DNA of 64,000 bases, from contig OZ365118.1 of the NCBI GenBank assembly GCA_977030845.1, positions 3,100,001 through 3,164,000 of the forward strand. The letters run 5' to 3'. The position numbers and the translations under genes are program-made. The DNA comes from Fimbriosthenelais zetlandica. Lineage: Eukaryota. This document shows, piece after piece, positions 12,302 through 50,370 of this stretch; the first letter of the stretch is position 1, and every line of letters starts with the position of its first letter. The notes beneath the pieces were generated by a model that worked only from the letters and a program-made list of their open reading frames with translations, did no database searches and had not been told where the DNA came from.

Positions 12302-12485
12302 AAGTTCCGTGTCCCTGTAAGTGGCCATGAGCACCTAGGGGGCCGTGGTCCCGGTCCTTGGAGTGGCTATGGTCCCGGTCGCCCTCCTCGCTCGGTCCGC
12401 GCCCGCTGTCTGTATTTGACCCCTCTCCTGATGACGTACTCTCCGCGTCACGCTCATGCTTCATCAGCTGGAGGAACTGATGCAC
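12302..12485 (-). CDS. Pcdh: Protocadherin cytoplasmic exon (VHQFLQLMKHERDAESTSSGEGSNTDSGRGPSEEGDRDHSHSKDRDHGPLGAHGHLQGHGT), phase 0->1
   Basis: Acceptor ggtttttggtttgcgttgcag| is phase 0, matching the large-exon donor. Donor CTT|GTAAGT is phase 1, matching the terminal exon. GC-rich island in AT-rich intron. The DSGRGPSE motif resembles the DSG-containing CM1 region of delta-type protocadherin tails. Confidence 0.75.
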
Positions 12486-13224: not shown

Positions 13225-13309
13225 TCTTTACAGGATGGGAGAGGGAAATACTCCACGGGCCAGTCTTTACAGGATGGGAGAGGGAAATACTCCACGGGGG
13301 CAGTCTTTA
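13225..13309. repeat. 39-bp tandem duplication
   Basis: tctttacaggatgggagagggaaatactccacggg at 13225 and 13264, with a partial third copy. Confidence 0.9.
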
Positions 13310-17500: not shown

Positions 17501-20500
17501 TGGTTGATTGCGTTTCCTTCACTATTGCTGAGGAGACACTTCTGGGTGTCTCCTATCATTCACCGGGTTAGCTCAACCATGCAGGCTTTCTCTGCTTCTC
17601 GGTTTCAGCCCAAACAGCATGTTTTTAATGAAAAACACAAGCGTCTGCTGCAACCGGCCACCACCTCCAGGCTTTCTTGTGCTGGGGAACCTTTTTATCC
17701 CATTCTCTTTGCCTGGTCCGGCTTTGACCGCCACAAATAGAAGGTAGGCGATACAGTTAGCCTTGCTGGGGTGATGGAAAGTATTGGAGTCTCCCTGTAT
17801 GCGTCTAGATATCAGCTAGAGCAGCAAAGCCGGGGGCAAGCTTGACAAAGAGCAGTCCCAGAGGAGGCATGGTTGTGAATGAGGCATCATCCCTGCTAAG
17901 ATGCCCATACCATCCTATCTAAAGTACCCCCAACAGCATCAAACCAGGCCCTCCTTAAATGCCTCTTTGCAATATTGAGCACCTAGCAAAGAAGGTGCTC
18001 ATCCCGGTGTCATATTCACTACCTTTACCCATTAGCTATAACCTATTTCCTTGGGTGTTTAGAAACAATTATTACACCCTGCCGCACTAGTTGTATCCTA
18101 TGAATGTTTGCCTGAATGAAACGCCACTTTCCATCTACTACCTACACGTCTCCGCTCTAAGAGGCGGGAGTATTATCAACTGTATCCACGGGGCCGTAGA
18201 TCATTTTTATTTTGTGTTATTAGTATTGGGGAGATAGGGACACGGAGGGTGCATGGACGTGCCCAGGATCCCAATACAGGTTTTACCAAGTAACATCCCC
18301 ACGTATCATCACGCAAAGCCAAGGATATAAAATTTGGATTAGGGCGTATGCGTGATTTGCTTCTTACCTCATTTCAGGGAGAGACTTCCTCCTTTCTATG
18401 TTCTATTGGACTTATTGTTCAACTTTAATGGACATTTTGGGTTTTTGTTTGTTTATCATTGCAATGTGCCAAGGATGTTCAAGATGATTAAGTCTTAATT
18501 AGTAATAAATGCTTCATGGTTATTGTCAGTGGAACTATGAAATGAAAATGAGGTTGTTGTAGGGAGAATCAAGGCTAATCTTTAGCAGCCATAGCCTTTG
18601 GTGTGATATAAGGTAGAAGGTAAATAACGCACCTCTACGTCCCTCTGTGTTAACACCCACGGCCGCATAGAGGGCGTTGTAGACTGCTGCGGGCCGCCAT
18701 GTTGGTGCTGGCCTCGGTTTGGATTTTGGACATGTGTAGAACCGACTGATAATGCTGAGGCATGCGCAGGTGTCAGGGAGCCTGGAGAGACCTGGAAATA
18801 GAGCATGTATAGCGTTATTACTCCACAATCTCTCCCCATCTCACGGCTTAATACATGAACGAGGCATAAATCCAGCCGTAATTTGAAGTGCTGAAGCATG
18901 TGAAAATATCCAGAATCTGAAGGCAACTTTTGTGGCTCGAGTTACATCGATCGTGCCTAATGGGCATTTTTGAACCCATTTCCCACGTGAGAGGAACTGT
19001 TGCTATCGATTTCAACCCAGATTAGAGCTCGTGTAAAGTGGGGCATTATGCCATACGATCAATCTCACTCATTAACTCCTTGTTAAAGCATTAAAGTAAA
19101 GATATATCTGACATATATTCCAGGCATGGGGTAAAAAAACAAAGTGTTTTGCTGACTTAAAGTTTAGTGGTCAAGATTGCCTCTGTGGGAGAGCTCAATT
19201 TAGTAGACTCTGAAACTGCTGATACAGAATTTACCTTTAAACATATAAAACCTAGCCTATATTTTATGTTTCTTTCAAACTTTTCTCATTGTTTTTATTG
19301 CTTCGAACATTCTGTCATTTGAAAGTTTGAAATTTAAAGTCGAAACTTCCACTGGTTCAGTCTCCAGAATAAAGCCTTGCCATGCTCAACCATTGCTTAC
19401 GTCTCCCGACATGCCAAGCTCTGATGTCATCAGGGCTGACTTCCGGTTCCGCTGATGGCCAGTTACTGAGCGTGATGGTCGGAGGGCGAGCATTAGGTGG
19501 ATATAGGCTCATGACCACTGACCATAGGTAGACTGATGAGGAGAAAAATGACCAGAACAATATACAACTCCCCTACTACCCTCTCCTAATGTGGACTTAA
19601 CAGGGCAGAAAGCTTATACAGGTCCGATCCCTGTAGGGCTACTTACATTCCAGTCTCAACCAAACTCCATACACAGTCCCCATACTACATCATTGTATCA
19701 GTTGTGTAATGAAGGAATGAATTCAATTGTCAAGTTTAAGTGTGAACCATTGCTATTTCCGCATTGAATTTATGAACATGTAGCCTATACAGCGTAATGG
19801 GTGCAATCTACAGCACATCAAAGTGGAGTAGCGCTCCTGGCCTAATTACCTTGCAATTATACAAAGCAAGATTTCATTACCTCAATCATTACCTCCCCGG
19901 GAGAGCATATCTACAGAACTACTCCCTGTGGTGGTGGATCATAGCCAAATTCATCATCAAGTCGTCATTTTATTTGCCAAGGATAGAAAAAACAGCTCTG
20001 TATTTCCCCCTATATATCTGTACCAGTTGGTGGAACCTGTTACTCTGCTTTGGGACTACTTTAAGACCCAAACCTAGCATATTCTGGTACGTTTATGGCG
20101 ACTTTCATATCTGGCAAATGTAAAAGGATCGATCGTCAGTGATCAACAACTGTTGTAGCATGCATGGATGAGCTAACAGCCAGTGGTGAATGGTCCCCAC
20201 TGACGGCTTGATGGTGGCACTCGAGCTCCACCAGCTTTAGACACCTCCATTTATCCTGCTCTCCCATACATTTGTCAAGCCCCAGTAAACTCTCTAATCT
20301 CTGGTTTCAATATAAACATGTTTTCAAAGCTCTCCCCCCTTCCAGTTTAAACATATCTATCATCCCTATTCAGCAGGGACTAACTATAGGGCGTGCTTGT
20401 TGCTGATTGCTGTTTTAAAGGCAGGATTAATGTTAGTTATCTTTAAGTAAGATGACATTTGTAACATAGTAATATTTAAAGAATCCCAGACTACTGTCTA

Positions 20501-23189: not shown

Positions 23190-23725
23190 ACAGACAAGGT
23201 ACAGGCCTTCCGCCCTTCCCTTATTTCCTGACACAATTTATTCCTTCGGGGCGCCAATTTCTTGTTCCCAAGACAGGAGATTAACTAGTAGATCGATGAT
23301 GTGTTGTAAATCGTATTATAATGAAACGGTTCAAAATAAGGCCTGGTCTTAACTATAGCTACGGCCCCGGGGAAAGTACAGAGGGGGTACAGGGGAGGCG
23401 GGGGTAATGTACCGTGCAATAGACGCGACTAATTCAGCTGACGGAAAGTGACAAGGCCACGTTTCACTAAAGATAGCTGAGAAAAAAATAGTTGAATTAG
23501 CCCAAAATACATCTGATCCCAAGTGAAGTAGAAAGGAGTGGCATTCACACTTAGCTGAGTTGTACCTAGATCCCACCTGATCCAAACCTCAAGAGCGAGG
23601 TTTGCCCTTCGAAATATGATAAAAACCAGTTTCTATGATCCTAATATCATGGAGATAAAAACGACTGATGTTCTTTATATGTGAGTACATTGTACTCTCG
23701 TTAAGGGAATAAAGGAAGGTTGGCT

Positions 23726-23820
23726 GGGTGGGGGGAGCCCCTTGTCCTAGCTGTGATAACTTAAATGATGGCCGGGTGGGGGGAGCCCCTTGTCCTAGCT
23801 GTGATAACTTAAATGATGGC
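23726..23820. repeat. 48-bp-period perfect tandem duplication
   Basis: gggtggggggagccccttgtcctagctgtgataacttaaatgatggc at 23726 and 23774. Confidence 0.92.
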
Positions 23821-43700: not shown

Positions 43701-44832
43701 GTCTTATATGGATTAGCCACCATTGCTATGTATTGTTATGCCGGATGACTCAAGAATTATATATATGAGTTATTCCAAGCCTTCTCAGCGCGGGAGAGCT
43801 TGGTAATTAAATTAATTAGTACCTACATTTAATTAGAGAATTTTAATTGTATCCTTATAGAACAAAGGTAATGGTAACATAAAATGTTAACTTTTTCAAT
43901 GTGGATTAATTTAATAATATCTGGAGCACCCATTGCATAATAGATAACATTATGGTTTATGATTTATGAGAAAAATACTGTACTCTTCTGATGTAATTCA
44001 GGAAAGTGCCTCGGGAAGAATCTTTTATGATCATATATGCACTAGAAAACATCATGCGTATTAGGCATGCAATGATGTGCATGTTCTTGGCTTGAGATAT
44101 TCCAAAAAGCATTTACCATTCCACTACATCTCTGAAGTTTATATATATGGACCTATATATGGAGTTCAATGGCCCTGGGATATATGGGCTAATTGAGTCA
44201 TGGAGATGGTTGTGCTACCTGATACCTCATACTTCCCAAGGCCTCATTTATTTATATGTAAAACATTACATATATAAATAATACTTCATCTAGTGATCAA
44301 ATGCCTTGTGCATCTTTCTTTATAACCTTCTGTTAATCAATAAGATAATATGTCCCTCATATCAGATCTTTTTACATTTGTTTTTCCATTGCTTTCCATA
44401 ATTATTTTCATCCCTTCATACGTTTTGAGATGTTATTTGATGTTTCATGTAATGTATTGACATCGTCTTCTATACCTCTTCCATCTTATCATATCTATGA
44501 TGTACTATTATAATTTTTTCCCCTGTGAAGCTTCAGAGAGGTCTGATTGGTTTTACATGGAACCGCTCCCTCCCTATATTATATAAGACCATTAGCTATA
44601 CAAGAGGCCGACATCTAAGCCCCATGCTTGTAAATACACTCCCACATGTCATAGATAAGAAATGTTCCTTAAGCAAAGATGAACCTCCCCTCCCCTTACA
44701 CAGAGATGGCGGAGGAAGCTAATCCTGCCTGCTTAATCTTCTTTCGTTCCAATATTGCTCAGTCATTGCATTAGAGGAAGCCTTTATTAAATAATAAGAG
44801 ATTTAATTGAAGGCAGAGTTAATCATGTTGGC

Positions 44833-45730
44833 TGTGTTTTCACCTAGCTGTGGGGGTGGGGTGGGCTGGATGTTTTCACCTGTGGGCTAGGGGCTGGGCT
44901 GGGTATTTTCATGTACTTTTCGGGGTGGGGTGTATAGGTTATGGGTGTTTTCACGTACCTGTGGGGGTGGGGGTGGTATGGGTGGGGTGTATAGGTTATG
45001 GGTGTTTTCACGTACCTGTGGGGGTGGGGGTGGTATGGGTGGGGTGTATAGGTTATGGGTGGTTTGACCTACCTGTGGGGGTGGGGGAGGTATGGGTGGG
45101 GTGTATAGGTTATGGGTGGTTTGACCTACCTGTGGGGGTGGGGGTGGTGATGGTATGGGTGGGTGTATAGGTTATGGGTGTTTTGACCTACCTGTGGGGG
45201 TGGTATGGGTGGGGTGTATAGGTTATGGGTTTTTTCACGTACCTGTGGGGGTGGGGGTGGTGATGGTATGGGTGGAGTGTATAGGTTATGGGTGTTTTCA
45301 CCTACCTGTGGGGGTGGGGGTGGTGATGGTATGGGTGGAGTGTATAGGTTATGGGTGTTTTCACCTACCTGTGGGGGTGGGGGTGGTGATGGTATGGGTG
45401 GAGTGTATAGGTTATGGGTGTTTTCACCTACCTGTGGGGGTGGGGGTGGGGGTGGTGATGGTATGGGTGGAGTGTATAGGTTATGGGTGTTTTCACCTAC
45501 CTGTGGGGGTGGGGGTGGGGGTGGTGATGGTATGGGTGGGGTGTATAGGTTATGGGTGTTTTCACCTACCTGTGGGGGTGGGGGTGGTGATGGTATGGGT
45601 GGGGTGTATAGGTTATGGGTGGTTTCACCTACCTGTGGGGGTGGGGGTGGTGATGGTATGGGTGGAGTGTATAGGTTATGGGTGTTTTCACCTACCTGTG
45701 GGGGTGGGGGTGGTGATGGTATGGGTGTAG
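44833..45730. repeat. G/C-skewed minisatellite (units of 51-69 bp, mostly 63 bp) spanning the exon/intron junction, each unit carrying a 5' splice donor
   Basis: Unit (minus) ...ccatcaccacccccacccccaCAG|GTAGGTgaaaacacccataacctatacactccacccata. Donor exon-end positions are 45696, 45633, 45570, 45501, 45432, 45369, 45306, 45243, 45192, 45130, 45073, 45016 and 44959 (spacings 63,63,69,69,63,63,63,51,62,57,57,57). Degenerate copies extend to ~44833. Confidence 0.97.
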
Positions 45731-48452
45731 ACTTATCCTCGTCATGATGGTGACGGTGATGTTGATCGCATCCATCCACTAAGTCCACGTGTGTCTGCTC
45801 GTAACGGTTATTCATTATAAACTGCTTATTATTCCTTTCTTTCTCAAAGCCTTTGTTCCTACAGTTGTCCTCCGCCTCTTTGGGAGGGTCATTGGTGCTC
45901 AGTAATGTTAGAGCTTTCTTGGGGCAGTTATATTTGCCGTTTTTTTCATTCCGTCCTGATCGCCTTAGAGCAAGAATGGCAATAATTAGAAGCACTACAA
46001 TTACTCCTGTTACGCACGAGACAATGACTACAATCATTAAGTTATGTCCCAGGAGGAAGCCCCCTCGACCTGTGTTGAAGGCAATAGTGTGATTCACCAT
46101 TATATTGAGTGTCGTTTTCGCCAGGCGGGGAGGCTCCCCATGGTCTCTCACAGCGATTTGTAAGTCAAAAGCTTCAAAATCAATATTTTTCAACTTTTCA
46201 TTAATGATTGAGACACTTCCGGTGGTGGCATCCACACTGAAAAACTGCCGGCCAGACCCCTTCACCACTTGGTATGTGAGGTTGCTGTTTTGCCCTATGT
46301 CTCTATCGAAGGCTCTCACCCGGGTGATTACATAACCTAGGGGTACCATGTTAGATATATGAATGGTGTTGTTGGTTTTGGAAGGGAAGTCAAAGACTGG
46401 GACATTATCGTTGGTATCTGAGACATACACTGATACGGTAACACTGCTGGTTTTAGGAGGTGTTCCTTTGTCAATAGCCTGCACCAGTAGATAATACACA
46501 GAGTCGTCTTCTCTGTCGAGAACCACCTTAGTGGAAATGGTGCCACTCTTGGGGTTAACAGTGAATTTATCTATGGCGTCTGGCGTGGGGAAGAAGGAGA
46601 ACTCGAACTGATTGAATGGAGGAGCGTCCCTGTCTATGGCGTGCACCACACCCACTTCTTTACCTGAGGGTTGATTCTCCATCACAGCGAAGGAGTAGCC
46701 GTGCTGGCTGAACTGTGGACTCTCATCATTAACATCCTCAATGTCCACCGTGATGGTGGCTACGCTAGTCCGCGGCTTATCCGCCTTGTCAGAGGCGATT
46801 ACCCTGAACTTAATCTGCTGAATCTCCTCGTGGTCAAACATGACTGAAGCACTGACCACTCCAGAGTTGTGATCCACCTTGAAGAGTTTCTGGTAGTTTG
46901 GTTCTACATCGTACCTGATGGCGCCGTTATTGCCAGCGTCTGCGTCTGTAGCATTAACATGCGCTATGAAAGCTCCTATGAAGTTATTCTCTATAAGTGA
47001 GGCTTGGTATTGTGTGCGTCTGAATAAGGGGGAGTTATCATTGATGTCAGTCACTCTCACTGTTATATGTTTTATAGCCACCTGGGGATCTAAACCTCGG
47101 TCTCTACAAGCTATAGCTAGATTATAATCGTCCCTAGTCTCCCGATCCAGATAGGCTCTAGTCACTATCTTGTACTCACTCTGATAGAGCTGCTGGAGAG
47201 TGAAATGATTGTCATTTAGTGAACATATAAACTGGCCGTTCCTGCCTGAGTCCGGGTCGTTGACAGTGATGTGGGCCACGAATGTGTCTAAATCAGCATC
47301 CTCAGCAATCTCTGCTAGACTGGTGCCGCTAGCCGCCAGCGTGTTGACCGTGATCTGCGGGGCATTATCATTCTCATCCCTGACTTTGATGATGACAGTA
47401 GCATCCGCAGTCCGTGAGTCTGGGCTCAGATCGTGAGCGGTCACTGATAAATGATAGATGGAATTCTTCTCATAGTCGATGGTTCCCTTGACATAAATCT
47501 CACCCGTTGAATTACGGATGCCAAAAAGCTTCCCATAGGATGTTTCAGTGGTGGTGGAGAAGCCATAAATGACCTGGCCATTCAGGCCGATATCATGGTC
47601 ATTGGCGTGGACACGCACGATGGGTTTCTGTGGTGGGGTGTTTTCCACTATAGAGACTTCGTAGGTGGTATTACTGAATACTGGGTCATTATCATTCACA
47701 TCGTTTACTGTCACCATCACATCCACTGAGCCGGATTTAGATGGTGTACCTCCATCATACGCGAAAATCTTCATCTGGTAATAATCCTGGATTTCCCGAT
47801 CCAACATGGCTCTGGTGACTAACCTCACCTCAGTGGATCCATCCACCTTTGATTTAGCATCCAATTCAAACTTATCTGTGTTGGAGAGAAGCTCATACCT
47901 TTGTATGCCAAAATCACCACTGTCAGGGTCTATAGCAGTTGGTATCACAAAGCTGGCTCCAGGCATGGCTGATTCAAGCACCTGGTAGGATAGACGGGGT
48001 TCAGGGAAGCGGGGGGAGTTATCATTACGATCTAATATATTAACTTTAACCTTAATGATCTCCAGGAAGCGGAGTGGGTCTGGGATGACAGCCACTACAT
48101 CCAGCTGTACCGTACATGTACTTTGATGGGCACAGATTTCATCACGGTCCACGGGGGGACCTGTACGTAAGATCCCAGTGTCTTCCTCAATGGTGAAACC
48201 CAGCTCAGGTCGGGATAAGAAACGAAATTCAACATTTGAGAGCTGGGATTCGGTATAGCGGCTGCCGACTCCTGCATCTCTGAACACATTGCCCACATAG
48301 GTGCCCCTCTGAAGCTCCTCCTGTATCCTATATGGCAGCTCCATGTGACGAGTCTCCTGGGCTTTACTTTCATCCAGGTGTCCTAACAGTACAATAGCTA
48401 GCAGTAGTAGAGACCTACATACCAGCATTTCAATACTCCCGTACCCAGACAT
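45696..48452 (-). CDS. Pcdh: Protocadherin large first coding exon (919 codons): signal peptide, 7 extracellular cadherin repeats, transmembrane helix, juxtamembrane cytoplasmic segment
   Basis: The 1108-aa ORF 45126..48452 has a hydrophobic N-terminus (MLVCRSLLLLAIVLLG). Six DxNDxxPxF/I-type linkers (DRNDNSPRF, DVNDNDPVF, DENDNAPQI, DINDNSPLF, DVNDESPQF, DTNDNVPVF) define 7 EC repeats, with DRE/DYE and AxDxG motifs and an EC1 C-x5-C (CAHQSTC). TM is LMIVVIVSCVTGVIVVLLIIAILAL (~45966-46040), followed by RRSGRNEKNGKYNC. The first donor CAG|GTAGGT ends the exon at 45696 in phase 0. Identity is near-certain; the 3' boundary is ambiguous because the donor is repeated. Confidence 0.95.
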
Positions 48453-50254
48453 CTCTATAGCTATGAGTAATGGTGAAATAATCCCAGGTTAATGAGTTGT
48501 TGTGGTCAAGTGTAGGTGGGTGGTAGGGGTGGCAGGGTGTGAAGGTGTGTTGGTATGACCATATCTATAATCCAAGTGATGTTCAGGTATGGTTAAACAC
48601 CCTTTATCCACCGCCACATGTAAACTCTGATCCTATATCTACTGTAATCCCTTCATGTGTTGGCATCTCCCACTGGAGGGATGGGTGCTCCTACTCCTTC
48701 TATGCTCCTCCTGCTTCTAGCAAGGATTCAGGAGCTTAGGGTGGATACCACAGAGATGGGGCCGCTCCTCTCCTTCACTTCCAAGAGCATGACTTAAAGA
48801 CGATGTCCTGAGACGATATTTACAATGTGTGCAACAAGCTACACAAAGATAACTAATACAATCCACCAACGATAGTTAGCACAAGACAACTTCTCAAACT
48901 GAGTACCAAGTCCCTTAGTTCCATACCACTTAAGTTTCTAAAAGAAACACACACATATCCAATGATGATTCAAATTAAATATAGTCCTTCCTATTGTTGA
49001 ATTCACTATAAAAGCCCACTTCATTCAAGAAGGTTTTTTGAGGTAAAATCCAATAGTTAAGGGCTTGTCAGTGCACACAGGGAGTAATAGGTGAAGAGAA
49101 GGGTTGGCAGTGGAGATGGTGTGGACTCTCCCAGGCCTGCCTCACAACTGACAACTGGCGCTCTCCGCTGACGCTAGTAGTACTACCACCACACAGGCGC
49201 CACCCACTAGCGTCAGGGAGAGATGCGAGCCCTCCATACAGACTGGCAATAACTCCACATCCCTTCTACCATGAGGATGTGGGCTACAAAACGATTCCTA
49301 AATCTAGACGGATCAAAAGTTTTTAGAGAATACTGATATGCTATTTTGTCAATGGTCAGTTTATTTGAATATTAGGATAATTTCATGGAAATATTTGGAA
49401 TTTGAGGCAGATGCATTCCCCTCAGTGCATGATACTAGGACTATTTTTGGGGAAACCGTTATAAAATATTCATGAAATTGTCCAATATTTTAGTTTTTTC
49501 TATTTGAAGGAATTATGAAATATATGTGGATAGGATGTTTTAAATCTCTGGCAGGGTTTGGGACAAATTATGGATATTTTCTTGTATCCTTCTCTTCCTT
49601 TTAGTGGTGGGAGAGTGGTGTAGAGAAAAAGAGAGGTATATAGAGGGAGACAGAGGAAGAGAGATTGCGGGAGAGGTATGGGGAGAGAGTGAGTCTTGAT
49701 GAATTGTGAAGTTGGGCCTTTTTCTGGCGAACACAAGGCGTGGAGCTCACTCAGCAAGCGAGCCCATGAATACTTTAAGTGCTAGGATAACTCACACTGA
49801 CGCGTATACGGCCTCGCTGCCCACCTCACTCTCATTCAATACGCCTGCCACCGATACCTAGCTTTACTATTGACCCCCAGGTAGGGTGGTTGCTGGGGGA
49901 GAGATGGGGGAGAAGAGAGAGATGGGGGGATAAGCGAGTGAGAGATCACTCAGTGGTATCTTCAAAGATATATGCTAAAAAGAATCAAAGATAATTCATA
50001 AGAAACCTCGGTTCTTTTATAAGAATGGGGTTTCTTATTCAAGTATCACTTGGAATTATTAAAGCTGGAACTTCATGTATAGTAGATCTAGCATGTTAGA
50101 TCCACTTAAGAATCTAGCATGTTTAATATGGTTAAAAATTAACAATTCATGAGGCACGATGAAAGGGAGATGGTTTAGCTGGATGGAAGTTGTTCCCACC
50201 CTCACTGCCAGAAGCCGACTGAAGAAGGGTGGCATGGGGGTGGGTTAGCGCAGC

Positions 50255-50370
50255 CGCTGATTGGTGGAATCCATGACAATGGGAGGGATTTCATTGGTTG
50301 CTGTGGTGATTGGAAGTATGATGGGTTGAATGACCATGGGCGGGATGTGTGTAAGGGGGGCGTGGCAGGG
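50255..50370 (-). promoter_or_regulatory. Candidate proximal promoter: three CCAAT boxes plus GC boxes
   Basis: ATTGG at 50260, 50293 and 50309 (minus strand CCAATCAG, AACCAATGA, CCAATCAC), GGGCGG at ~50338 and GGGGCGTGGC at 50357-50366. Located ~1.8 kb upstream of the protocadherin ATG. Confidence 0.45.

Follow-up and report, generated by a model that had tools for sequence, protein, structure and literature searches.

The 64,000 nucleotides of Fimbriosthenelais zetlandica DNA that we analysed (contig OZ365118.1, positions 3,100,001 to 3,164,000; hereafter the window) contain a whole protocadherin gene on the minus strand. All gene features below are on this strand unless stated otherwise, and there are no N letters in the window. 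The coding part of exon 1, delimited by its open reading frame and by Pfam, lies at 45696-48452. It comprises 2757 nt or 919 codons and ends in phase 0 with ...STPIPSPPPPPQ at the first splice donor. The exon encodes a signal peptide, cadherin domains, a transmembrane helix (the hydrophobic stretch MIVVIVSCVTGVIVVLLIIAILAL) and a juxtamembrane region. Read without splicing, the frame continues into a read-through ORF of 1108 aa (48452-45126). For this ORF, Pfam reported Cadherin in six stretches (E 4e-99) and Cadherin_2 (E 6.5e-16), and no cadherin C-terminal domain. Its best named relative is Pcd11x of Platynereis dumerilii (53% identity); the other named matches are from the annelids Ridgeia and Paralvinella. 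Delta-type protocadherins have six or seven cadherin repeats and one transmembrane helix, and they lack the catenin-binding tail of classical cadherins. Judged by its sequence, the gene is an annelid delta-type protocadherin with a giant first exon and small cytoplasmic exons. Pcd11x is built in the same way, with one giant first exon for the ectodomain, the transmembrane helix and the proximal cytoplasmic part, followed by a few small cytoplasmic exons.

Three further exons complete the gene. Exon 2 (18633-18791; 159 nt, 53 aa, phase 0-0) was detected by tblastn with residues 921-976 of Pcd11x. It is bordered by the acceptor tatttccag|G and the donor GAG|gtgcgt, and it ends in ...RPWVLTQRDVE, similar to RPPWPLTQRELE of Pcd11x. 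Exon 3 (12302-12485; 184 nt), found in the sequence and by tblastn, runs from phase 0 to phase 1. Its product, VHQFLQLMK...SGEGSNTDSGRGPSEEG, shares 67% identity with residues 971-1009 of Pcd11x. Exon 4, the last coding exon (1368-2092), follows the acceptor ttcttgcag|TG in phase 1 and ends in ...ISKDVVV before the stop codon at 1370-1368. Exons 2-4 match Pcd11x and two further relatives (P0038 and P0034), including SGEGSNTDSGRGPSEEG. The exon 2 segment is present in Pcd11x and P0038 but absent from P0034, and exon 2 may thus be a cassette exon. Pfam families were found neither on exons 3 and 4 nor on the intronic ORFs. The first-pass annotation had paired the array of donors described below with the acceptor at 12485. 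This acceptor is real and in phase 0, but the next exon is more likely the one at 18791-18633, which had been missed.

The joined model (48452-45696, 18791-18633, 12485-12302 and 2092-1368) has 3825 nt and encodes 1274 aa with a single terminal stop. It is collinear with residues 11-1172 of Pcd11x at 45% identity over ~1200 aa, and its first intron spans ~27 kb. As the model that starts from the first donor has an open frame and matches the order of an annelid relative derived from mRNA, it supports this donor as the border of exon 1, and we infer that the exon/intron border at 45696 is genuine. Just before the exon-end motif, at 45741-45763, we observed a His-rich insert (QHHRHHHDED, encoded by CAY repeats); the orthologue P0001 shows ANEDD at this place. 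The insert is a second change of the slippage type within the same 100 nt.

The end of exon 1 is the first copy of a minisatellite. Tandem Repeats Finder detected it at 44923-45727 with a period of 63, 13.1 copies, 92% matches and a score of 1074, which makes it by far the strongest tandem repeat listed for the 64-kb window. Two-copy tandem repeats also occur in introns of the gene, at 13225-13309 and 23721-23820 (39 bp and 48 bp, with 95-98% matches). On the minus strand, the array is a head-to-tail repeat whose units align in register. The Tandem Repeats Finder result, the donor list and the unit alignment together delimit a core at 44959-45727, which consists of the exon-end copy and 12 full units of 63, 63, 69, 69, 63, 63, 63, 51, 62, 57, 57 and 57 nt in this order. 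Each full unit closes in CAG, followed by GTA(G/C)GT. Two degenerate units of 79 and 36 nt (44844-44958) follow towards the 3' side; they were recognised from the sequence and from the alignment with the intron of an orthologue. In the copy next to the unique intron, CAG|CTAGGT, the donor GT is lost. Units 1, 5, 6 and 7 have the same sequence, from which unit 4 departs only by 6 additional nt; unit 3 also has these 6 nt, and unit 2 is marked by an A>C change. Length variants of the units differ by steps of 6 nt, which reflect an internal sub-repeat (CCCCCA/ATCACC). A search with 25 nt of the unit matched the window 13 times against 0 expected, and all 13 matches lie within the array. The array is therefore a local expansion, and a dispersed element or transposon was ruled out as the source of the unit.

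The unit spans the exon/intron border. It had been described as ~30 bp of exon end plus ~33 bp of intron start, a split that is approximate and can be verified only in part. Based on the unit alignment and the comparison with the orthologous contig L001, at least 31 nt (ACCCATACC...CACAG) derive from the exon end. At least 14 nt (GTAGGTGAAAACAC), which persist after the array and in L001, derive from the intron start. The 18 nt in between can be assigned to neither side; they may be a diverged copy of exon sequence. On the plus (template) strand, the region 44844-45730 consists of 48% G and 8% C, which is typical of the classical unstable G-rich minisatellites. A strict G-quadruplex pattern fits only the 57-nt units and their neighbours within the array. 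Furthermore, the array contains plus-strand ORFs of 106-191 aa (GVGVV... text), which are by-products of the repeat.

To characterize the donors, we listed every AG|GT(A/G) site in the region with a script. The array contains 13 CAG|GTA(G/C)GT sites, the number given in the first-pass annotation. With phase counted from the ATG at 48452, the first nine donors are in phase 0 (last exon bases 45696, 45633, 45570, 45501, 45432, 45369, 45306, 45243 and 45192), and no stop codon lies ahead of any of them. Use of the first to the ninth donor would add 0, 21, 42, 65, 88, 109, 130, 151 or 168 aa. These results reproduce the earlier claims of nine stop-free phase-0 donors and the proposed ladder of lengths exactly. 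The additional residues had been interpreted as a polyproline tail; this interpretation does not hold, as the modules would sit within the cytoplasmic domain, where ~355 residues follow from exons 2-4. According to the donor script and the unit alignment, the remaining four donors (45130, 45073, 45016 and 44959) are in phase 2, because a 1-nt deletion has left unit 9 with 62 instead of 63 nt. The donor at 45130 itself creates the in-frame TAG at 45128-45126.

Seven of the nine phase-0 donors read CAG|GTAGGTGA and are identical over at least 11 nt, whereas the donor at 45243 reads CAG|GTACGTGA and that at 45192 reads CAG|GTAGGTCA. The 5' end of U1 has a generally known sequence, for which ViennaRNA duplexfold predicted pairing energies of -12.6 kcal/mol with GTAGGTGA, -8.7 kcal/mol with GTACGTGA and -11.8 kcal/mol with GTAGGTCA. 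The seven upstream donors thus pair with U1 more strongly than the ancestral GTACGT type (-12.6 vs -8.7 kcal/mol). The GTACGT type, which is also the donor of L001, remains in units 8, 12 and 13. In each of the seven GTAGGTGA donors (45302-45692), a second GT is present 4 nt downstream (TAG|GTGAAA, phase 1). If used, these weak tandem donors, which overlap the main ones, would cause a frameshift.

The unit reads CCACCCCCACCCCCACAG|GTAGGT and thus has the formal shape of a recursive splice site. Such ratchet points juxtapose a 3' splice site, consisting of a U-rich tract and AG, with a regenerated 5' splice site and occur in long introns. Here, the tract is rich in C and A and nearly devoid of T, in contrast to the genuine acceptors of the gene (tatttccag, gcgttgcag and ttcttgcag). 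We consider it unlikely that the array forms a series of ratchet points.

We then compared the locus to its closest orthologues, which are available as ORF calls on genomic contigs and share 91% (P0001), 85% (P0002) and 78% (P0003) identity with the protein. There are three orthologues in all, located on L001, on L004 and on L002 and L003, which are two contigs of one assembly. In all three, exon 1 ends with (T/N)IPSPPPPPQ directly before GT, and the ORF reaches a stop codon 2-19 codons past the exon end. The first-pass annotation had proposed that each unit recreates the 5' splice site of a protocadherin exon, and the orthologues, which end the exon at the same motif, bear this out. It had also asked whether related species carry one donor or an array. 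The orthologous contigs carry a single donor and no repeat: CAG|GTACGT in L001, CAG|GTAAGT in L002 and L003, and CAG|GTTAGT in L004. As L001 extends ~820 bp past the donor into unique intron, its single copy does not result from an assembly break. More distantly, Pcd11x and the other relatives differ from the window gene in that they have no repeat at the end of exon 1. The exon of Pcd11x ends in ...STIDHKTLE instead of the IPSPPPPPQ that is found in the window gene and its three orthologues.

The alignment with L001 also places the insertion. The DNA of exon 1 is 80% identical between the window and L001, and the unique intron after the array (~44700-44843) can be aligned to the initial ~110 nt of intron in L001 (L001:5010-5140), with the matched blocks TGCCTTCAA…TCTTATTAT…TAATG…GCAAT. 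If this conserved intron start is a splicing element, it now lies ~850 nt from donor 1. The single donors of the orthologues and the alignment of the intron after the array show that tandem duplication has inserted the repeat exactly at the exon/intron border. With one donor in three related species, the array is recent and lineage-specific; on this comparison, it arose after the split from the three orthologue lineages. Exons 2 and 3 were not found within the 10-kb downstream flanks of the orthologue loci, where the introns are presumably longer. We also observed two conserved non-coding blocks 1.2-1.9 kb upstream of the ATG. The blocks at 49697-49812 and 50284-50365 are 90.5% and 84% identical to L001:810-925 and L001:262-343, respectively, compared to 80% for the coding exon. 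Constraint on elements of the 5' UTR or the promoter may account for this.

Does the array itself carry signs of function? That the frame stays open as far as the ninth donor says little in favour of function, because 63 is a multiple of 3 and the length variants come in 6-nt steps. The other two frames, 1 and 2, are closed by TAG and TGA inside GTAGGTGA, and thus only the exon's own phase could stay open. In addition, the identity of units 1, 5, 6 and 7, with unit 4 differing only in length, indicates that these units are too young to have accumulated stops. Units 1-8 differ by a handful of substitutions, most of which change the amino acid (N to T, G to R, N to K), and these give no sign of constraint. 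From 5' to 3', the array decays: units become shorter, a 1-nt deletion and a TAG appear, and two degenerate units and a lost GT follow. This decay suggests that the distal copies are not needed and that the working donor or donors lie upstream. The 3' part thus decays like an intron, which fits the use of an upstream donor and a neutral remainder. Neither a same-species protein nor a transcript turned up in the searchable collections: a query with the full exon 1 gave no match above 91% identity, exact look-up of the 1108-aa ORF with three alternative starts gave none, and a query with the exon end plus the array found no match among the searchable proteins.

Minisatellites that reiterate a splice donor have been described before. 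In the human genes F7, CBS, IFI6, LMNB2 and PDGFA, the first unit of a minisatellite spans an exon/intron border (Borensztajn et al., PMC1557585). In F7 intron 7, the unit of 37 bp is present in 5-9 copies, and splicing takes only the first donor of the series; the later copies can work in experiments, but 5'-to-3' scanning lets the most upstream site prevail, and among the later copies only perfect-consensus sites gain some use (PMC1557585). Splicing is likewise confined to the authentic donor in LMNB2, with 10-15 copies of a 100-bp unit, and in PDGFA, with 16-18 copies of an 81-bp unit (PMC1557585). More than one donor is used in two of the genes. In intron 2 of IFI6 (6-16), which has 25 pseudo-sites, splicing uses the authentic donor and the next two, and the same holds for the 31-bp VNTR of CBS exon 13/intron 13 with its 15-21 units (PMC1557585). 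The CBS unit corresponds to c.1444_1467+7, that is 24 nt of exon and 7 nt of intron (PMC2630376). Lastly, the VNTR in ABCA7 intron 18 starts at the exon 18 donor and has 25-bp units that each begin with GT; one unit is retained via the second donor at a minor level, and the length of the VNTR affects splicing (PMC5954066).

The array in the window has a unit within ~10-100 bp arranged head to tail, a first unit on the border and a near-identical donor in the later units. It is thus a minisatellite of the F7/CBS/IFI6/LMNB2/PDGFA/ABCA7 type, an arrangement already described, and by analogy its donors would be used as in these genes. The first-pass annotation had presented the array as a new route to protocadherin diversity and had overlooked this class (PMC1557585, PMC5954066). 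There are differences among the likenesses. F7 resembles the array in that the first unit spans the border and the authentic donor is followed by identical copies; however, exon sequence makes up just 4 nt of its unit, whose length is not divisible by 3, whereas the unit here has 63 nt with at least 31 nt of exon and nine copies in frame (PMC1557585). LMNB2 and PDGFA have units of similar size that reiterate an exon/intron junction, but they are vertebrate genes. IFI6 and CBS are junction-spanning with many donors and are the nearest precedent for the use of multiple donors; they differ by short units, by the use of the first three donors only instead of a graded ladder, and as human genes unrelated to adhesion receptors or proline-rich motifs. 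In ABCA7, retention of the unit is out of frame and harmful, and the array is purely intronic from the GT onward (PMC5954066).

We therefore consider it probable, at roughly two in three, that the array is a lineage-specific border-spanning minisatellite of which an upstream donor is used, the rest being neutral intron. A segment of ~57-63 bp across the exon 1/intron 1 border would have been duplicated in tandem to give 13 strong 5' splice sites. From the human precedents, the donor at 45696 is expected to be used, perhaps with minor forms of +21 and +42 aa. The spliceosome would mostly take this most upstream donor and join it to exon 2 (phase 0) at 18791 or, with exon 2 skipped, to 12485. 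The canonical product would be the 1274-aa protein. Possible minor use of the second and third donors would add one or two repeats of the conserved PIPSPPPPPQ motif. The remaining array would be spliced out as the first ~850 nt of the intron and evolve neutrally, so that the array would have little or no function. This choice of donor is most likely given the mammalian precedent and the pattern of decay. The upstream-first rule comes from mammals and the rules of annelid splicing may differ. The conserved intron start adjoins the last units and could favour distal sites over exclusive upstream use. Furthermore, the first seven donors are identical and pair strongly with U1, which makes competition among them possible.

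A second explanation is that several of the nine in-frame donors are used in a graded way and yield a ladder of isoforms with 0-8 extra VGENTHNLYTPPIPSPPPPPQ modules, which alleles of different copy number would shift. The nine stop-free donors, seven of them identical and strong, are what this explanation needs. IPSPPPPPQ is kept in the three orthologues though the preceding residues vary; it is thus probably a functional motif, of which each unit carries a copy. IFI6 and CBS employ two extra donors of comparable arrays (PMC1557585). In all the genes studied, however, use stops at the third donor at the latest, and three of them use the first donor alone (PMC1557585). The open frame is explained cheaply by a unit length that is a multiple of 3, by hexamer steps and by identical young units, the substitutions in units 1-8 lack a sign of constraint, and the orthologues manage with one copy. 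A graded dial of proline-rich modules, as first proposed, would run against the precedents and is unlikely. Neutral expansion with one donor in use, which the first-pass annotation had offered as its alternative, is the better reading.

The 1108-aa ORF, which stays open through nine in-frame units, could also represent an isoform in its own right, in which the array is not spliced and the protein ends within intron 1 at the TAG at 45126, without the conserved cytoplasmic exons. Short isoforms that terminate in the intron following the large exon are known from vertebrate delta-protocadherins. Directly after the array and ~320-340 nt past the stop, we found the hexamers ATTAAA (44807-44802) and AATAAA (44788-44783). 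These hexamers are not conserved in L001, however, and are expected by chance in an AT-rich intron. U1 sites suppress nearby polyadenylation, a process known as telescripting, and thirteen strong U1 sites should do so here. Thus, we regard such an isoform as improbable.

We give even less weight to a harmful allele, in which the distal donors (45130-44959) would be favoured and the mRNA would keep the TAG at 45126, with degradation or a truncated protein as the result. A proximity effect is known for duplicated strong 5' splice sites, and the conserved intron sequence adjoins the last units. This effect has been described as contested, and the F7 experiments favour upstream choice (PMC1557585). 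The distal units also carry the weaker GTACGT type, the last copy is without GT, and the gene is otherwise intact in all four exons. Finally, only one assembly was seen and tandem repeats are error-prone in assemblies, but that the array or its length is a mis-assembled single junction is very improbable, as an artificial expansion would not give ordered unit differences (63/69/51/62/57), point changes and a decaying 3' end, and there are no N runs nearby.

For annotators, our analysis implies that the 1108-aa read-through ORF is not the protein and that the gene model gains a missed exon 2. The biology of the protocadherin would be affected only if splicing did reach the extra donors, and the present evidence makes this unlikely. 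Choice of a distal donor, if it occurred, would be harmful via a frameshift and a stop. If graded use were true, one gene would produce isoforms with varying numbers of PIPSPPPPPQ docking modules, placed after the juxtamembrane region and before the part encoded by the conserved cytoplasmic exons. Among junction-spanning minisatellites, the array would then be the first one shown to generate an in-frame series of modular proteins instead of silent pseudo-sites. On the reading that we prefer, with an upstream donor in use, the array is a clear-cut invertebrate case of an arrangement that is rare but already described, in which a minisatellite born at an exon/intron border offers many identical donors. 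With seven identical strong donors 63 nt apart and the first nine keeping the frame, it is a natural substrate for studying outside mammals the rule that the most upstream site wins.
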